Shown one piece after another: positions 3,738 to 25,928 of a stretch of DNA of 64,000 nt. The stretch is from NCBI GenBank assembly GCA_021613535.1, contig CP075497.1, positions 13,206,001 to 13,270,000 on the forward strand, given 5' to 3'. The stretch is from Adineta vaga. Taxonomy: Eukaryota > Animalia > Rotifera. Each line of letters opens with the position of its first letter. Position 1 is the stretch's first letter. Under the pieces are notes generated by a model. That model worked only from the letters and a program-made list of their open reading frames with translations. It made no database searches and was not told where the DNA came from. The position numbers were made by a program, and so were the translations under genes.

Positions 3738-4082
3738 CTTGAGGATGTGGGTGAAGAAGATATACCCACAGACACCTACACCCTCAAATAATCATTAAAA
3801 TTATCGAACATATCTACATCTACACTCTCGGTATTATAAAATAAAAATAGATCAATTAGAATACATTATATACTGCTCAAACTTTGAAATGATATTGTTT
3901 TTTAGAATATTAAATGCTAATGTGTTTCCATAAATAGTTCTTTTTTTTAAAATTTTTTATACGCAAAACAATTGATGAGACGACAGTGAGATGACACTCT
4001 TCCACTGATAGAATCAAAAGAGCGATGCATCATAATAATTGATATATTTCAGATGCTTTTTTATTTTAGTAGACTGAGTAAA

Positions 4083-5604
4083 ATGAATATTTCAATACAA
4101 TTATTTATTAATATCATTATAATTTCGTATATTGAATCGATTTATCAATCAACTGTGATTTTTAGTTCACTAGGAAGTGAATTTCAATCAGAAAATAATC
4201 TTGATCTTTTTCTTTCAAAAACAGTTTCGAAAAGAATCTTATGTATTGCTCTTTGTAATCAACATCGATTGTGTTATACATTTGATTTTGATTTCATATC
4301 TGGTCGATGTCGATTATTTGAAAGTAATCTTAGAACAGGTTCAATTATCGTATCATCTTCATCATCATCGATTGTTGGTATTATTAAATTAACATCGAAT
4401 TTATATCAATCAATACATGATCAATCTTGTCAGATATGTGAACACAATCGATATGAAATATGTTCATCAATAAAAAATACTTGTCAATGTCCATTACACA
4501 CATTTTGGAATGGTTCAATATGTTTATTACAATTGTATGAAAATAGAACATGTTTACAAATCGATGGTTGTCGAAAAGATTTCAATTTAACTTGTTCAAT
4601 GGATGTTTATGGAAAATTTCTTCAATGTTCGACAGGTATGAGAAATTCTTCAAGAAGTATCTTATTGTTTTCTCTTTCATCTCGATCGTCTAGTATCACC
4701 ATCAGCACTTCCATTTGGTGTTACAGTAGTTGGATTATATAATGGAACATCAAATGATAATGATACGATATTATCTGGACCGAGAGGTATCGCTTTTTCT
4801 AACAATGGTTCATTATATGTTACTGATGCAACTTATAAAGTGATTCGTTTTCCACAAAATAGTCGCATTGGTCAAACAGTAATGACATATCTTAGCAATC
4901 CTGCAATGATTACTTTTGATCAGACATTATCCAATTTTTATGTATCTATACCGTATAATGCTCTTGTGCAGATGTGGCCTTCAAATAATACAATACCACC
5001 AAATCCTGGGACTGCAAGTTGTACGACGGATTTATTATATTTTACGATTGGTGTTGCAGTAGATAGTTTAGGTAATGTATATATTGCCAGTACTCTTTGC
5101 AATTGGGTTACTAAATGGTCACTAAATGCAACCAATGGAACATTAGTAGCTGGTTTATCAACAGCAAATGCAGGTAATGATAATTGGTCGTTAAATTGGC
5201 CATTTGGTCTCTTTCTTGATGAATTAAATGAAAACCTCTATATTGCTGATTATTCGAATCATCGTGTACAAAAAGTTATATTAAATGGTTCAGGATATGG
5301 AGTTACTGTTGCTGGTGGAAATGGTGCCGGTGTAGCAGCTAATCAACTCAATAGTCCAACAAGTATTATTGCTTCGCGTTACGATGGAGCAATCTATATT
5401 GCTGACAGAAATAATAATCGTATACAGAAATGGTTAGTCAATGCAACGTTTGGTATTACTATAGCTGACAGTCCAAGCGGTATAGCTGGTAATACACCGT
5501 ATTTATTGAATTGGCCTTTTGATATCAAATTGGCATGTAATGAAGAATGTTTGTATGTATCCGATAATCGAAACAATCGTATTCAACGATTTTATCTTCA
5601 ATAA
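4083..5604 (+). CDS. Secreted PAN/apple + Cys-rich + NHL-repeat beta-propeller protein (intron 4636-4693)
   Basis: Signal peptide; CIALCNQHRLCYTFDF apple motif; Cys-rich segment; NHL repeats LYIADYSNHRVQK, IYIADRNNNRIQKW, LYVSDNRNNRIQRF. Confidence 0.85.
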
Positions 5605-6984
5605 TAAAAACGATTGTTCTTTACATATATATTTGTTTTCGTAAATATTTACTTTCAATTGTATGAATAAAAGAAATCAGTACAAAATCATATGTGATTA
5701 CTTTATACACAGTTTGATAATTTAAGAACCTTTAATCATTATATAAATTATATATTTATCATATAGATGAATAACGCAGTTATACTTTTATGTTGAGATC
5801 TTTTAATAAATCAATATATTTGATGAAGAGTGAGTGTTAGTATCGATTCTTTATTCCAACCCACACCCTATAATGTTGATTTTCTCTTGTTACATTAACC
5901 ATATTTTGTTTTTCTAATAAATGATATAATGAACGACAATATTTAGAGAAATTTATTTTATAGCTAATAAAAATTAACTGTTAAAAATCTTTCCGGATTC
6001 AAAAAAAAGTAACTTTTATAATTTATGAACCATAGCATATCTATTCTGAAGTTGTATAGTGCAACAAATCAAAGAAATGGATTATCTATTAAACAATTTC
6101 GCTTTTGAAAAGTCGATTATAAAGAAATTGTATTTGAGTGAATAACAGATTATTTAGAATAAGCACTGCGTAGAAACTGTAAAATAGATACTAACTTTGT
6201 TAATAAATGACTATATAGATCCGTTTTTGATATTTATAACAGCGAGTTAAAAAGGAAATCCATATGTTTAGTATTTACAAAATATATATATAAAAACAAG
6301 TCAAATAAAAATGCTACCACTTCATTAATGCAAAATTTCTGATTATGTTCATCTTACGTGCTTTTTTTATTTCAATCTGGTTTTTCTTAGAGAATACTCG
6401 TCAATTACTTCTGCAATATTAAAAATAACATCGATTTGATATTTTAGTAAATTTTCGACAAGATTTCTATTTGTATCGCATCGATAGATATTTGATGATC
6501 GAAGTATGCTTCTTCTTCATTATTTAAATTTCGTTTTAAATTATAAACAATTGCAATACATTGGTTTAAAAAATCCATAAATTGATAATATCTGGAAATT
6601 GGAAATATTGTTTTTGAGACAAAAGAAAAGAATAAAACATATGAAAAGAGTCTTTCTCTAATCAATATGTGTAGACTTGTGCAAACATCGAACTTGCCCA
6701 TGTTTGGAACGATATTGTGTATTGTCATTATATGGAACATCTGTACATGACATCATCACATATCTTCTTTCGTTCTGTTCTTTTATATGTTCATGACGTC
6801 ATGTAATCATACTTTTTTTTTAAATTTCCCATACAAGGACAATATGTGTGATTTAAAATAGAAGGGAAAAAAGCTCACAGTCAAGTTCATATCATGAAGA
6901 AAGAAAAGAAAAAAACGAAAGAAGCGTGTTATCTATCTATATATATATATATCTGATCATAACACAGTAAGAGACATTTTCGTC

Positions 6985-13699: not shown

Positions 13700-14588
13700 A
13701 TGAATCGCACAGCTTTGGTGACCGGTGCTGCACGAGGTTTAGGACGTGCAATTGCTCTTCGTCTTGCTCAAGATGGTTTCGATGTTGCTGTTAATGATAT
13801 AGAAATTAATTCTTCTGATCTTCAAAAAGTTCAACAAGAAATCGAAACAATAGGTCGAAAGTCAATTGCTATTATTGCTGACGTCGCTATAAGTGAAAAG
13901 GTCGAAGAATTGATGCAAGATGTTCTTGGAAAATTAGGAAGTCTTGATGTATACATGTTTATTTCTAATTATTCAATTTCTTTTTCTCTTTTCATTAATT
14001 CGACAGGTAGTCATTGCAAATGCAGGAATTTGCATTGTGAAATCACTTTTAGAAACAAGTGCAGACGAATGGGATAAACTTTTTGAAGTTAACATGCGTG
14101 GTGTATTTCTTTGTTATCGAGAAGCAGCAAAAGTGATGATCAAACAAGATAAAGGAGGGAAAATTATTGGTGCTTGCAGTACTGCTGGATATAAAGGATA
14201 TCCAATGATTGGTCATTATTCAGCTACGAAATGGGGTGTACGAGGTTTAACACAAGCAGCTGCTCAAGAATGAGCTCGGTATAAAATTACAGTTAATAGT
14301 TATTGTCCAGGTATGTTTTATTCTTTTTTTTTCAAATGTTTCAAATTTAGGGAATTTTCAATAGGACTTATTGATACAACGATGACCCAAACAAGTAATG
14401 AAGAGATAGCAAAACTTCGTGGATTGACAGTAGAAGAAGTTGCGGCAAATTCCGTCAAAAATATTCCACTCGGTCGTACAGGACAACCTGATGATGTTGC
14501 AAATGTTGTTTCATTCCTTGCAAGCAAGGATTCTGATTACATTACAGGTCAAAGTATTTTAATCAATGGAGGATTATATTTTTCTTAA
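13700..14588 (+). pseudogene. Short-chain dehydrogenase (acetoin/2,3-butanediol dehydrogenase-like) with an in-frame TGA at 14271-14273
   Basis: TGAARGLG, ANAGI, YSATK motifs; introns 13949-14006 and 14311-14364; frame reads AAAQE*ARYKITVNSYCPG where Trp is expected. Confidence 0.8.
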
Positions 14589-14775: not shown

Positions 14776-15800
14776 ATGAGCGAATCACTTTCATCGTCAA
14801 CTTCCTCCGATCTTCAAGTTCCCGATGAAAAATATCTAACACTTTTAGATGGTCGTCAATTAGCATATACTGAACAAGGTGATGTAAATAGTAATAAAAT
14901 AATGATATTCTTTCATGGAGTATTTGGTGTTGGAAGTTCATCACCTGAAGAAAAACTTTATGATGACATTAGATATCATTTTATTGCTCCTACACTTCCT
15001 GGTTGGGGAAATAGTTCACCATGGCCAGAAGATCAACGAATTTTAAATTATCCGAATGATATTCATCAATTATTATTATCTTTGAAGAAAAATCAGAAGA
15101 AACAACATCTTCGAATCACTGTTGGAGGTGGAAGTTACGGAACTGCTTTTGTTCAAATATGTTTCTTTGCATCTCCTGATATAATGCCTGAAGTTACTAA
15201 TGTTGAATCATTAGTTCTTTGTTCTGGTTTTTCTCCATTTAAATATCATAGAACATATACGACAGGAATGAGTTGGTCAAATTATGTTGCAGTTGGTGGA
15301 CCAGCAATTTATTTTCCTTCTATTCGAAGATTACTGGGAACATTTCTACAGAAGAAAGCTCGTAATATAGACGAAGCAAAGAGTTTCTTACGAGTAAATA
15401 TATTTGATTTAATGGATGCTGAAGAAAAAGTAAAATTAACTTACATAAATGGGAAGAACAGAGAAACAGACCATTAGGATCGGTTCTTGAAATGATGGCA
15501 AGAAACATGTGTATAAGTATTGCAAAAACAATGGCTGGATTTAATAGCGTTGCACATGTGTTACATTCAGATTGGGGTTATGATCCAACGAAAATGCCAG
15601 CACTACCAAAACGAAAAATATTAATTATAACTACAAAAGGAGATAAGATAGCTCATATGGAAATGTCAACTTATTTAGCTGAAACTTATCCAAATGCAGA
15701 ACTTCGAACAATTGAAGGAGGTCATTTAGCATCATTTTTTGTACTTAATGATATTATGAAAGATTGGTTAACAAGTCTTGACCAAAACTTTGACGAATAA
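14776..15800 (+). pseudogene. Alpha/beta hydrolase, frameshifted near 15430
   Basis: LLDGRQLAYTEQG, FFHGVFG, GGSYG nucleophile elbow, GDKIA, GGH; C-terminal half continues in another frame (NLHKWEEQRNRPLGSVLEMMARNM). Confidence 0.75.
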
Positions 15801-18415: not shown

Positions 18416-19535
18416 TCCTTAAAACGCATTCTTGCTATAGGATCACCTTTTTGAATGGTAATATATTCATCATCCTGGCTTACTTTGGATAAAGAAAAAA
18501 CAACGCATAAATTAACCCCTTTCCATCCCGAGATTTCCTTGCGTTCTGTACAAACACGAAAAAAATTAAAAATCTCTCTCTCTTGTCTCCAACTAGTTAT
18601 ATGTAAATCTAGTGTGATTATTATAAGAAGAACCACGTGTGGTAATTCGCTTGAACATCACATGATGTTCGTCTTCTAAGACGACGAAAGAACGAAATAA
18701 AATATTTTGCGTTCTGTATGGCATCTACGAGATGTCATGCGGAATTGAAAGGGTTAAAGATGGGTGCAGCAAGCACATAATGTACATAAGAAATGTGAAA
18801 AAGTGAAGCCGTTAAAACTAACCGTGATGCATATAACTCATTCAAGCCGACGCTATGTTGGAAAAAAGGAAAAGGATAAGCTGCATAAATAGCATATAAT
18901 ATTTCCTGCAGGCTCATATTACAAGGTATTCGTTTCGACATCGGCATCAAAAAGTTAGTACTATATTCGAGTTTTTAGCGCCTCGATTCACTCCTGTACT
19001 TGAGTAACGTCTCCAATAAGTGGAGTCGGATAGAGCTCAAAAGGGTGTGGGCGTGGGTGAGAATGTGGGTACTCCTGTCTTCTGCCATTCACAACCATGC
19101 ACACATATATACACATACCCTCAAGGGAAGGAAAAGAATGACTAATATAACAAATCGTTAGCTTCGTAGAGTGACATTTGTTGACGCTAACATATAGAAC
19201 ATGTTTCGCTCTCTAGATAACTTTTTTTCGGGTCCAGGATCTCGTTCTAGGGCACAATGTTACAGAGTATGGAATACCATTTCGGAAGAGTTTTTGTTAC
19301 TTAAAAATTAAATCTGCAATAAGTTTTCGGCTTAATTAACACTATTATGACTAAGGCTCGTATGTCGAAAAGATACAGAATAGATGAAATTAAATACACG
19401 TTGACAGTGTGCTTTGATAGCTCAGCGATCTGAGTCCTGGCTTAAGTATCACAGTGATAATTTAGTTCCATTTTTTGTTTTAGTAAGATCGAATAATTTT
19501 AGCAATCCTCATTACTACTTCACATTGATATCACG

Positions 19536-22106
19536 ATGGTTTGGGAACAAATTGATTGGTCCATCTCCGAAATAACCATCGCTTTCGGCTCTTTGCTGAT
19601 CCTAGGCTTCGTCCTCCTTCAGGTTTGTTGATTTCTGGTCTTGATCTCACATAAGTTACTCGATATTTAAAATATGAAACGCTCTCCTACATAGATGAAG
19701 CACTGGTTCAGCTTTCGCAGCACAAACAGCTGGTATCGATCGATGCCTTTCAATATTCGTGAAACCTTTTCATTCGGCGCTCTCCGCAAGGCCACCTTCT
19801 TGGGAAGGTCCTTTTCTAAGAAACATGGTCCAATTTATCGTCTCCATTCTATGTTTGAAACAGTCGTGTAAATTATGCTCGGTTGTTACTTTTCTTTCCA
19901 TAGTTCATCTTTTAATTTATTAATATAGAATTTTGGCATCGAGCGATCTTGCAGCTGAATTTTATAAGCATTCGCGAACACTACAACGGAGTCCTGAAGT
20001 TTCTTTGCTAGGCCAGGTATCGGAAACTGTCATGGGCAAGTGTATGGCGGCACTTCATGGCCAGCAATGGCAATCATGTCGGAACGCCTTCAAGACAACA
20101 TTTCTTACAAAAGCAGTACAAGATTGTTTCCAAATGATCCAGGGTGAAATAACCAAGTGGCAGGCAGAGTACGTGACGAACGGCGCCGTTCTAGATGTTC
20201 AACGAAGCAAAATCGACGAACTACCACTGAAGATCCTAGTACATGTTGTGTATGGCGATGATATCACGGAAGATGAAGTCGAGCAAGTGTTGCTGTTTGG
20301 CCGAGAACATGGGGTCATTATGGATGCATCCATGAACATCCTAGAAAACTTACCGGGGTACAAATCGCTACCTTGGAGTTTGAACGCTCGTTCAAAGAAG
20401 TTTCGTGCAGAATGGCAACGCTTCAACATGGTCAAACTGAAGAAAGCATTAAATCCGAGTGCTCAAGAACGAACCGATGTCTTTTCGATAGCGGCAAAGT
20501 ATTTTATGCAACAGGAAGATGACTTTGACTCAAAAATAGCTATGGTTTGAAGTTCTGAAAATAGATTTATTTTTTAACGAGATTTTGTATTTAGTTCTTT
20601 GATACAATCGATGAAATTTTGCTCCTAAACATCGACGTAACCTACGTTGCACTAATGAACATGCTGGTTTTTGTAGCGTCGAATGAAAGCGTTATGGCCA
20701 CACTCCGAGATGAAATCAAGAATTCGGCATCGTTCAATAGCAAGATCGAATATGACACTTTATCTAAACTGCCATATTTAGATGCTGTTTTCAAAGAATC
20801 CGTGAGACTGAGACCGCCTTTGTCGCTTAGTTTTCCAGAACGTACGACTGAACCCATGATACTGGGTGGTTATCAAATTCCAGCCGGAACGGCCGTCATG
20901 ATCGATGCTGCATCCATTAACCACGATGGTCAAGTCTGGAATCATCCGGACGATTTCGATCCGAATCGTTTTCTTGACATCCAAGAGTCTGGTATTGAAT
21001 TTCAGTACTTTAAGTATGGTCTCAATCGTAATCGTCGATGCTTGGGCTTTCGTTACGCTGAGGCCATCGTTAAACAGGTCAGTTGGGATATCTTATCTTT
21101 GGCAAAGATTGACATTGCTGACGATGAGGATCCTACGCAAGCAATGAAAAAATGGTCGAGCTGTGTCAGAGACAAGGGGCTCCCATTTTTTACGCCGTAT
21201 TCAAACTTCCCACGACTCAAAATGACCTTCGATTTTGGCGATGTGACGTCCTTAAAATTAGCGCCGGTCTTTCGTATTGACGATGGGAAATCAGCGCCTT
21301 GTTTTATTGCTGGTGAGAGAGCACTACGAGAAAAGGGCAGCGTATTGTTTGGCATGAGTTTCGGCAACAGCTACTATTCCGAAGACGTCATCAAGTCGGT
21401 CATACCGTTTCTTGGCAGCCGATTCAGTCGCATCTTCATCGATGTTCCTGATGAGTGGACTAAACACACGTACACTGCCTTGGGCTATTCCGGTAGTGAT
21501 GCTAAGAAAAAGTTGAGAAATCTGACGACTCGCTTGCGCAAACGCTGCCAGTTGGGTGTCGATATAGCCACTCAGTCTGGTATAGCACCTCGTGAGAATT
21601 TCATCTTCGTGGATTGGGGCACACATGTCGAAACTTCAAATATTTATCAAAATGCTCTGACAAAAATTAAAAAGGCGTACCAGCAAAACGAAGCATTTAG
21701 AACTGATTGTAATGCGACGACTGAAGAGGTTCTCCGGTCCCAAGGTCGAAGCCATGGTTGGGACAACAAATCATCGGCAGAGCTAGCGACGGCAATTGAA
21801 ATCGCTGTCACTTATGTTCTAATGGAATTAGCTGAAGCAGTAGCTTTTGGAGACATCGCCTCTCGTGTAACAAATGGTGGTCATGCTCCAAACACGCCGG
21901 CTGCCATGGTTTATCACCGACGATGGCTAGTTTTGGAAAAGTTTTTGAACTGCGAGTATGAAAATGAAATTTGCAAACAGCTGGTAAACAAACTTGCTCT
22001 CAATTTTGGCTTTCTCATCTTTGAAGCAAGACCAGTTAAATGTTCGAGTCATGAAGAGTTTGCTGGTGACGAAACCGAGAAGGGCACCGCAACAGTCATT
22101 AATTGA
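19536..22106 (+). CDS. Cytochrome P450 - cyclodipeptide synthase (NYH CDPS) fusion protein, about 795 aa; exons 19536-19622, 19695-19867, 19929-20544, 20595-22106
   Basis: N-terminal TM anchor; HGPIYRL; I-helix TIDEILLLNIDVT; ESVR (ExxR); FDPNRF; heme motif YGLNRNRRCLG (Cys 21039). Then, in the same exon and frame, CDPS motifs LFGMSFGNSYYS (Ser 21357, Asn 21366), YVLME (Tyr 21813, Glu 21825) and VYH (21912-21917). All three introns are GT-AG and the exon lengths sum to 2388 nt in frame. Confidence 0.9.
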
Positions 22107-22332
22107 TACTTTTCGATGGGATAACCAAGAAATGATTACATTCTTTCTTTCTTTTTTAATGAAATTAGCCTTTTCTCTTCCTTTTGATTTTTTTTTGTTG
22201 AGAGTGGTGAGGTTTAGGTATCAATTCTTTATCCACACCTACACACCTACACCCTAAAATAGATTGTGCAGGAGTCATCACTAGTTTCTATACATAATCT
22301 TTTCTAGATTTCGTTTCACCACCGTCGAAGAA

Positions 22333-23489
22333 ATGTTTGGTACAACTTTTCAAAGGAAACTTGCTCATTGCGTAGTATTAAGAGCTACGTTGTTAATACG
22401 GCGAACAAAGTCGAACCAATGTCTGCACTTTTTTCCAGGAGAAAATTCCGATCTGCGTGGTGATGGTGCCTTTCGACGAGAGCAACCACTGGGATCAACA
22501 ATGGAACTGGCTTACGCAGGAGTTCTTTCATTTCTTCGCCGAAACTACACAAGAAACTTGCAGAACGTCGATGTGGCCGTCACTGGAATTCCCTTGGATT
22601 TAGCGACCACTTATCGTCCTGGAACTCGGTTCGGACCGAAGGGAATCCGGGAAGCATCGACTCAACTGCCCGATCTCAAGTCGCATCCCGGTGGAATCGA
22701 CCTATTCGAAGATTTAGCCGTAATCGATTACGGTGACTGCTGGTTCGATGCTAGTCAACCAATGACCATTCCGAAAGCGATCGAAAATCACGCCAAGGAG
22801 ATCATCGATCAAAACGTGTTCCTTCTCTCTCTGGGTAAGAGTTGCACTTGTAACAGAAGTACAATTGCCTCTTTCTTGTTTACCTTTTAGGAGGAGATCA
22901 TTACGTGAGCTATCCATTGCTGAAAGCGCACGCCGCCAAGTATGGCAAACCATTGTCGTTGGTACAGTTCGATGCACATTGCGATACTTGGCCAAATCCA
23001 CACGAGGACAGTCTGAATCACGGCTCAATGTTTTATTACGCTGTTCGTGAAGGTTTAATCAATCCGAAGACTTCAATTCAAGTTGGTATTCGAACCTTCA
23101 ACGATGACTTCATGGGAGTGAAGGTGCTCGATGCCAGTTGGGTCCACGGACATAGCATCGATGAAACTGTACAAGAAATTCTTGGACGGATCGGCGACAA
23201 TCCAACGTATTTGACCTTCGATATCGATTGTCTCGATCCGGCCTTTGCTCCCGGAACAGGTACACCAGTCTGCGGAGGTCTCTCCACGGCTCAGGCCTTG
23301 GAAATCGTCCGTCGACTAGGATCACTGAACTTCGTCGGCATGGACATCGTCGAGGTTTCACCGCCGTTCGACCACGCCTCGATTACTAGTTTAGCTGCAG
23401 CCACCCTCGCCTATCAATTTTTACTTTTACTCAGAAACAAAAAGATTCTCAGCAAAAATTTTCCATTTGTCCCTAAGTCAGCTCAGTAA
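22333..23489 (+). CDS. speB: Agmatinase-like ureohydrolase, bacterial SpeB type (intron 22835-22890)
   Basis: GIPLD...RPGTRFGPKGIR, spliced LGGDH, FDAHCD, FDIDCLDPAFAPGTGTP, DIVEVSPPFD; exact 5' structure uncertain. Confidence 0.9.
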
Positions 23490-25062: not shown

Positions 25063-25928
25063 ATGGATGATAAAACATTGCATACTCAAGATTATTTAAC
25101 TGAATTCGGTACAAATGATTATCTCGGTGCATATACACGCTTTAAAACTATTCCATGGTTTATGGAACATATTAAAGGATTGGTACGTGTTTTTGTTAAG
25201 AACAGTTCTCATCTTGGTCATGAACGAGCTCTTGAATTTGGTGGTGGACCAACACTTGTCTCATCTTTTGTAATTGCACAATATGTTCAATCAATTACAT
25301 TTTCTGAATATGTACCAAACAATTTGAAGGCAATAAATGATTGGGTCAATCAAGTCGAGGATGCTTTTGACTGGACAGATGTATTTAACTTTATCATCGA
25401 ACAATATCATCAACAGGTTAGTTAGTTGTCTGTATCATTCTTTGCTGCGTGATTTTAATAGTCTATATTATTTAGACAGGTATCACGCTCTCATTATCAG
25501 AATGTGAACAACGTTTACGTACAGATCTTCAACGAGGCGGTGTGCTACAAATCGGTGATGTGAATAAACAATCTGGTTGTGCTGTACTCGATAATCCAGC
25601 TAATTATAACCAATTTGATATTATTCTTAGCTCATTCTGTCTCGAAGATGCTTGTCTTACAAAAGAAACATACGAAAAGACTGTCGAACGACTGTGTACT
25701 CTGCTAAAACCGGGTGGTTTTCTTGTTTTAGCACATGGACGAAATCAAACATTTTATTATGTCGCCGACAAACGATTTTTCGCTCAATATATGAATGAAC
25801 AATCTGCACGTGAGACACTGGAAAGAATGAAATTAATCAATATTCAAAGTTCAGCTGTCGATCGAACACCTAATATGTATAGTGATTCAGATGGTTATTT
25901 TATTGTATGTGGATATAAAATGAAATAA
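25063..25928 (+). CDS. NNMT/PNMT/INMT-family SAM-dependent methyltransferase (intron 25417-25475)
   Basis: LEFGGGPT, ITFSEYVPNN, AFDWT, FDIILSSFCLE, LLKPGGFLV, FYYV motifs. Confidence 0.85.

Follow-up and report, generated by a model that had tools for sequence, protein, structure and literature searches.

An Acidic First-Substrate Pocket Suggests a Basic Substrate for a P450-Fused Cyclodipeptide Synthase of the Bdelloid Rotifer Adineta vaga

The P450-CDPS fusion gene and its neighborhood

The window analyzed here is a 64,000-nucleotide stretch of the Adineta vaga genome, located on a chromosome-scale contig (C6) of the 100.8-Mb, six-contig assembly, and all positions refer to it unless stated otherwise. 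Its forward strand carries a gene in which a cytochrome P450 is joined to a tRNA-dependent cyclodipeptide synthase (CDPS), annotated as I4U23_031446 and represented by a 795-residue database protein (P0001) containing both domains. The first exon (19484..19622), delimited by spliced contigs and by P0001, contains the start codon (ATG, 19536) and an N-terminal hydrophobic anchor. It is followed by coding exon 2 (19695..19867), a part of the P450 bounded by GT..AG joints in three runs, and by coding exon 3 (19929..20544), which encodes the middle part of the P450 and is defined by a domain profile match together with spliced contigs. The last exon (20595..22106), likewise present in spliced contigs, holds the C-terminal half of the P450, with the heme cysteine at codon 21039, and the complete CDPS domain (PF00067, E 1e-32; PF16715, 76.1 bits against a cut-off of 27). 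As these two parts share a single open frame (20619-22106), the fusion holds without any splicing assumption. The CDPS is single-copy in the A. vaga assembly, where spliced genes were searched exon by exon or via P0001.

In contigs of public runs from four studies, the GT..AG introns are spliced out, with all three introns removed in three runs and one in the fourth, and a 2670-nucleotide spliced contig spans both the P450 and the CDPS domains. These runs are listed as probable or unknown RNA, and the spliced joints identify the contigs as transcript-derived. The contigs also carry about 90-100 additional 5′ bases joined to position 19484, that begin with a match to the window near 18924, suggesting a non-coding exon upstream of the fusion. 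Also upstream of the gene, a 129-bp stretch (19193-19321) shares 81% identity with sequence lying before the Rotaria socialis orthologue, at an upstream distance of about 2.8 kb, and may be a conserved regulatory element or a repeat.

The Adineta and Rotaria genes are 88% identical at the DNA level (window 19441-22111 against positions 4071-6752 of the R. socialis locus L008, with a further match at locus L004), their introns remain alignable at about 69-85% identity, and dS between them is 0.26-0.38. The gene neighbors differ between the two genera, and the searches returned no other named bdelloid species. Taken together, this hints at a recent transfer of the fusion gene between bdelloid genera.

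Beginning 227 bp past the fusion stop codon, on the same strand, is a ureohydrolase gene (22333..23489, with one intron at 22835-22890) that is expressed in the same runs as the fusion. The sequence-only reading had seen in this neighbor a fit with a basic CDPS substrate, and an add-on to that view would have the ureohydrolase tailor an arginine-containing product, converting cyclo-Arg-X to cyclo-Orn-X. We regard this as very unlikely. The gene appears to be a SpeB-type agmatinase that probably lies outside the pathway: its best family match is the agmatinase profile NF002564 (122.7 and 280.7 bits for the two exons separately, where the cut-off of 302 applies to the whole protein), it carries the usual metal-ligand motifs, and its transcripts assemble as contigs separate from those of the fusion. 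Two paralogues, at 78% and 74% identity, reside on contigs C6 and C5 with no CDPS beside them. The N-terminal extension (22333-22480) is rich in arginine and lysine, with no acidic residue in the first 36 amino acids, and in this respect is reminiscent of a mitochondrial presequence, and the alignment with the C5 paralogue extends across this region. Additional genes near the fusion encode an NNMT/PNMT-family methyltransferase (25063-25928), an alpha/beta hydrolase (14776-15800) and an SDR-like protein (13700-14588). No match to the agmatinase, NNMT, hydrolase or SDR genes is found across nine loci of R. socialis, which extend as far as 10 kb downstream and 6 kb upstream of the orthologue, or in a Logan contig bearing an orthologue, such that the ureohydrolase and the methyltransferase have no support from synteny as cluster partners. 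As an argument for arginine, the ureohydrolase counts for very little, although it might act in trans.

An NYH-type cyclodipeptide synthase domain

The CDPS domain (21315..21959, + strand) scores 98.8 bits against TIGR04539 (cut-off 45), and its AlphaFold model (pLDDT 95) adopts the class Ic aminoacyl-tRNA synthetase-like Rossmann fold of the family. Structural comparison with AlbC and with histidine-using CDPSs had been put forward as a check in the sequence-only reading; with ParcuCDPS as the histidine user, it places the model among CDPSs. NYH-type enzymes are the best matches, headed by BtCDPS (Z 24.7, RMSD 2.2 over 218 residues), followed by AlbC (4Q24, Z 20.0), ParcuCDPS (Z about 15), and then tyrosyl-tRNA synthetases (TyrRSs, Z about 12.9). 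Mapping to AlbC places the catalytic serine and the first NYH residue at Ser37 (21357) and Asn40 (21366) (21357..21368). In the model and the alignment, a single predicted helix (21813..21839) carries Tyr178 (21813), Glu182 (21825), Glu185 (21834) and Ala186 (21837), and a third segment (21906..21917) contains Met200 (21906), the catalytic Tyr202 (21912) and His203 (21915). Thus, the catalytic set (Ser37, Asn40, Tyr178, Glu182, Tyr202 and His203) is intact, including the Asn-Tyr-His triad that defines the NYH subfamily. Helix α4 (21495..21575) retains the basic patch to which binding of the first tRNA is attributed (PMC4066775), with 8-9 lysine and arginine residues compared to 6.9 ± 1.5 in relatives.

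By every feature checked, namely profile, predicted fold, catalytic residues and α4 patch, the domain classes as an NYH-type CDPS. With the catalytic residues and basic patch intact, the ping-pong mechanism that is standard for CDPSs (PMC7613923) would be expected, and we consider it fairly probable, from sequence and model, that we are dealing with an active CDPS of the NYH type, positioned behind a membrane-anchored P450. Given the fusion, and by analogy with CDPS-associated P450s (PMC7954767), the P450 half probably oxidizes the ring product of the CDPS. The closest standalone relatives of the P450 half (19536-21230) are 33% identical, one of them from the coral Montipora capricornis (P0161); corals too encode NYH CDPSs.

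The pocket for the second substrate (P2) reads approximately T-E-V-S-R-W-P/L, from which the second residue of the product is not predictable. A T>C change at 21928, seen in three of the four runs, replaces Leu207 at a P2 position with the clade-typical proline, and the reference allele is the less common one among these runs.

The first-substrate pocket and its candidate substrates

Prediction of CDPS substrates rests on eight residues lining the first-substrate pocket (P1), which is hydrophobic in nearly every known case. In the rotifer enzyme these residues read LGDPWEAM (positions 33, 35, 65, 67, 119, 185, 186 and 200 in AlbC numbering). The sequence-only reading had derived the assignments, apart from Trp119, by counting from the catalytic residues with no gap, and they all lie on the + strand where it placed them: Leu33 at 21345, Gly35 at 21351, Asp65 at 21441..21443 (exactly 28 codons past Ser37) and Pro67 at 21447, in addition to the three given above. 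Trp119 (21615..21617) is kept across the clade and in ParcuCDPS. Ungapped counting holds against AlbC from Ser37 to Asp68 and, for all three pocket segments, against a colinear P450-CDPS fusion (P0165). In the AlphaFold model, Asp65 ends a strand (residues 44-48) and Glu185 sits one turn past the catalytic Glu182 on the same helix; with both sites on well-predicted elements, an alignment slip at 65 or 185 is ruled out. Sequencing error and a private allele are likewise ruled out, since the R. socialis and Logan orthologues have identical codons, and the transcript runs that cover the codons of the two acids show no differences there. In the AlbC crystal structure, P1 is lined at its deepest by L33, V65, L119, L185, F186 and L200 (PMC3105412), and this homologous geometry suggests that Asp65, on the pocket floor, and Glu185 both lie inside the cavity.

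How unusual this pocket is becomes apparent when 1.84 billion representatives are searched exhaustively: the Rotaria orthologue ranks first and is followed by CDPSs at 25-38% identity across the full domain, the named sources among them being Nanoarchaeota and Woesearchaeota. Scans of metagenome, viral and genome contigs returned close relatives alone, the ESM Atlas yielded only generic bacterial CDPS clusters, and a word-based search with the isolated CDPS domain gave no useful match. None of the 135 nearest non-rotifer CDPSs has an aspartate or glutamate at either of positions 65 and 185; these rows carry mainly F, M, V or L at 65 (hydrophobic in 99% of relatives) and mainly F at 185. An acidic residue anywhere in P1 occurs in 3 of 121 relatives, in every case at 200. 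These counts, together with the published products, agree with the earlier statement that P1 is mostly hydrophobic and that basic residues are rare among CDPSs. The same reading had flagged a serine in place of the histidine of HxxxGxS and an alanine in place of the proline of YxxxExP; the substitutions are real, but His31 is present in just 13 of 138 rows and Ala184 (21831, a motif residue outside P1) in 112 of 138, so that Ser31 and Ala184 are ordinary within the clade.

The departures of the rotifer domain from its clade are concentrated on P1 and not spread over the domain. When 167 columns are ranked by departure, the top place goes to position 185 and the next to Trp70, with 65 fourth, 200 sixth and 186 eighth. 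The ten highest columns, indeed the eight highest, thus include four P1 sites (hypergeometric P about 4e-4 for the top ten, a value that is partly post hoc, since the test was suggested by two of these sites). The pocket is also roomier, with a summed P1 side-chain volume of 1068 cubic ångströms against 1271 ± 68 in relatives, about 200 lower, and only 1 of 117 relatives falls below the rotifer value. By overall score, P1 is more divergent in five distant relatives, none of which has the acids of the rotifer enzyme. Three bdelloid orthologues have identical P1 residues and a dN/dS of 0.14-0.16 across the CDPS domain, indicating purifying selection; these orthologues are close relatives and thus count as a single evolutionary event. 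This constraint, together with the spliced transcripts, makes a pseudogene unlikely. The acidic, enlarged P1 of this expressed animal P450-CDPS fusion is therefore lineage-specific and under selection.

The extent of change could also mean that the domain has no standard cyclodipeptide output, either being inactive, serving as a substrate or tRNA binder for the P450, transferring the aminoacyl group elsewhere, or keeping a hydrophobic pocket whose acids are internally neutralized. The stem branch of the rotifer clade is long (1.19 changes per column in a quick tree) and further clade-conserved residues are altered (N94T, N98K and R102L). Close to where the pocket opens, Lys72 (21462) is a new basic residue that is invariant in the rotifers and could neutralize one of the pocket carboxylates; Lys98, the second well-conserved new basic residue, maps to the tRNA-binding patch. 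An AlbC construct with L33Y and L185D failed to express (PMC3105412), and two XYP enzymes with Glu185 are listed as inactive in E. coli. However, the catalytic residues and the α4 patch are all kept, the changes cluster on P1, and dN/dS in the CDPS domain is lower than the 0.18-0.25 of the P450 part, and we judge this outcome improbable.

The best reading of the rotifer P1 is a basic first substrate, a view that we hold with moderate confidence from the residues of the pocket and by analogy with ParcuCDPS (Parcubacteria RAAC4_OD1_1; PDB 7QB8). That enzyme makes cHP and cHE and was captured with histidine trapped in P1; its E174, at position 185, is required for histidine, with E174A and E174H rejecting it, while hydrophobic changes at Y55, E174 and Y189 (positions 65, 185 and 200) switch the substrate to leucine and phenylalanine (PMC7613923). 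The rotifer changes are the reverse of this switch at the same three positions, and they also bring in another acid and enlarge the pocket. On the branch to the bdelloid genes, an ancestral hydrophobic P1 of the LGFPWFLY type would have become LGDPWEAM, with two floor residues exchanged for carboxylates, two others for smaller residues, and a new tryptophan at position 70 (21456..21458). Trp70 is rotifer-specific, the relatives having mostly proline there, and is a possible cation-π partner. As judged from the conserved residues, a basic aminoacyl-tRNA docked on helix α4 would acylate Ser37, with Tyr178 and Glu182 holding the α-amine. Its side chain would then enter the enlarged pocket and pair with Asp65 and Glu185 between Trp70 and Trp119. 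As in the family generally, a second aminoacyl-tRNA would add and Tyr202 would cyclize the dipeptide, after which the fused P450 would be expected to oxidize the ring product.

As to which basic residue is loaded, the greater pocket depth and the second charge lead us, on chemical reasoning, to lean toward a long side chain. Arginine is the tentative first choice among single residues; histidine is a weaker candidate, and lysine a little weaker again.

Acidic residues in P1 do not by themselves mark a basic substrate, and here the chain of reasoning in the sequence-only reading holds in part: the pocket is acidic, and the Glu185 of ParcuCDPS provides a precedent for its use, but published motifs include a cGG enzyme (LPLDWVME), a cGN enzyme (CGDSWAHV) and a cYY enzyme with Glu200 as counter-examples. 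The last of these, an XYP enzyme, also speaks for a real rival, an aromatic first substrate capable of hydrogen bonding, either Tyr or Trp. Glu185 would then contact its phenol hydroxyl or indole NH, as happens in class Ic synthetases, and Ala186 and Met200 would make room. The rival is a real one because position 185 superimposes on a substrate-binding residue of TyrRS: AlbC L185 overlays TyrRS D158, the binder of the tyrosine hydroxyl (PMC3105412). The TyrRSs are the next-best structural matches of the model after the CDPSs, a large ring would fit the enlarged pocket, and the cnidarian Nvec2, whose P1 belongs to the ancestral type, produces cWL and cWF. Yet an aromatic substrate would account for one carboxylate and not two, and the characterized NYH enzymes using Tyr and Trp are hydrophobic at both 65 and 185 (VGITMLFN and LGVALFFA, among the motifs available from the published set). 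We consider such a substrate unlikely.

Less probable still is a neutral polar or small first residue (Asn, Gln, Ser or Gly), in which case the partner of the carboxylates would be an amide or an ordered water. The cGN enzyme, CDPS 27, is the sole characterized enzyme with Asp65 in the Gondry 2018 tables consulted, and the cGG enzyme has two P1 acids (D67 and E200). Against this, both belong to the XYP type, neither has Glu185, and bulky residues fill the pocket of the cGG enzyme.

With a basic first substrate, the product is probably a rare positively charged cyclic dipeptide, as far as pocket sequence and analogy can indicate. The most specific version of this proposal, in which a canonical-family, P450-fused CDPS loads arginine or lysine in P1 and the animal makes an oxidized cationic diketopiperazine from one possibly recently transferred gene, is plausible but somewhat short of an even bet. 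If true, it would offer a template for making cationic diketopiperazines, as well as a small molecule not yet described from a bdelloid rotifer. The naturally occurring NYH pocket with two carboxylates and its colinear, hydrophobic-pocket relative P0165 form a pair for studying the origin of charge selectivity.

Comparison with known systems

Among characterized enzymes, the rotifer pocket resembles that of ParcuCDPS (P1 GAYAWELY) in having Glu185, Trp119 and a polar residue at 65 (Tyr55 in ParcuCDPS). The two differ in that ParcuCDPS is an XYP enzyme of 15-16% identity, with one carboxylate, the bulkier Leu186 and Tyr200, an unusual local β3 strand and no P450 fusion. Of the features of the His-in-P1 type, the rotifer enzyme has Glu185, while Asp65, Met200 and NYH stand in place of Tyr65, Tyr200 and XYP; it may work like ParcuCDPS without belonging to that type. 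With the NYH enzymes of the LGFPWFLF type (the cPX group and cnidarian enzymes), it shares the NYH triad, Pro67 and Trp119 and, in the cnidarian members, the R204-W206-P207 end of P2, but their P1 is hydrophobic. The Nematostella enzyme Nvec2 likewise has an animal host.

Basic residues are rare in CDPS products, being limited to cPR from one NYH enzyme and to histidine in two XYP enzymes, only one of which places it in P1. The cPR producer is Lysobacter CDPS 83, whose authors assign proline to P1 and arginine to P2. In the 2018 account, no characterized NYH enzyme used His, Asp or Lys, and a 2022 review (PMC11610984) still recorded no CDPS product with lysine or aspartate. D65 and E185 do not occur together in any motif of Gondry 2018 Table 2 or of the supplement sheets examined, and there LGDPWEAM matches none of the specificity groups (cPX, cWX, cLL, cYY, cFX and others). 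Arginine otherwise enters this literature through the fungal RCDPSs (AnkA and AvaA), which also make tRNA-dependent, arginine-containing cyclodipeptides and depend on an acidic DDXXE motif (PMC11610942). These are described as a separate family with a catalytic cysteine and no recognized conserved domain, in contrast to the catalytic serine and clear PF16715 match of the rotifer enzyme, which rule out membership in that family.

With respect to domain architecture, two proteins from JGI samples, P0165 (968 residues) and the partial P0034, are P450-CDPS fusions with the domain order and linker of the rotifer protein, and P0165 is 30% identical to it over 746 residues. Unlike the rotifer enzyme, they have a hydrophobic P1 (F65, F185, L186 and Y200), and the quick tree gives no supported grouping of their CDPS domains with that of the rotifer. 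Fusions with an N-terminal P450 and a C-terminal CDPS apparently form a family without earlier description. Streptomyces CDPS 71 (cWY) also combines a CDPS and a P450 in one chain, but in the opposite domain order, in a bacterium and with a hydrophobic P1. A different architecture is seen in several relatives (P0056, P0059 and P0047), where a periplasmic solute-binding domain (PF00497) follows the CDPS at the C-terminus; PMC5816076 presumably refers to such proteins in noting 'ABC-transporter domain' fusions. Literature searches found no paper on any rotifer CDPS. Animal CDPSs are already known from cnidarians and an annelid, and CDPS-P450 fusions from bacteria; what is new here is a P1 with two carboxylates in an NYH CDPS.
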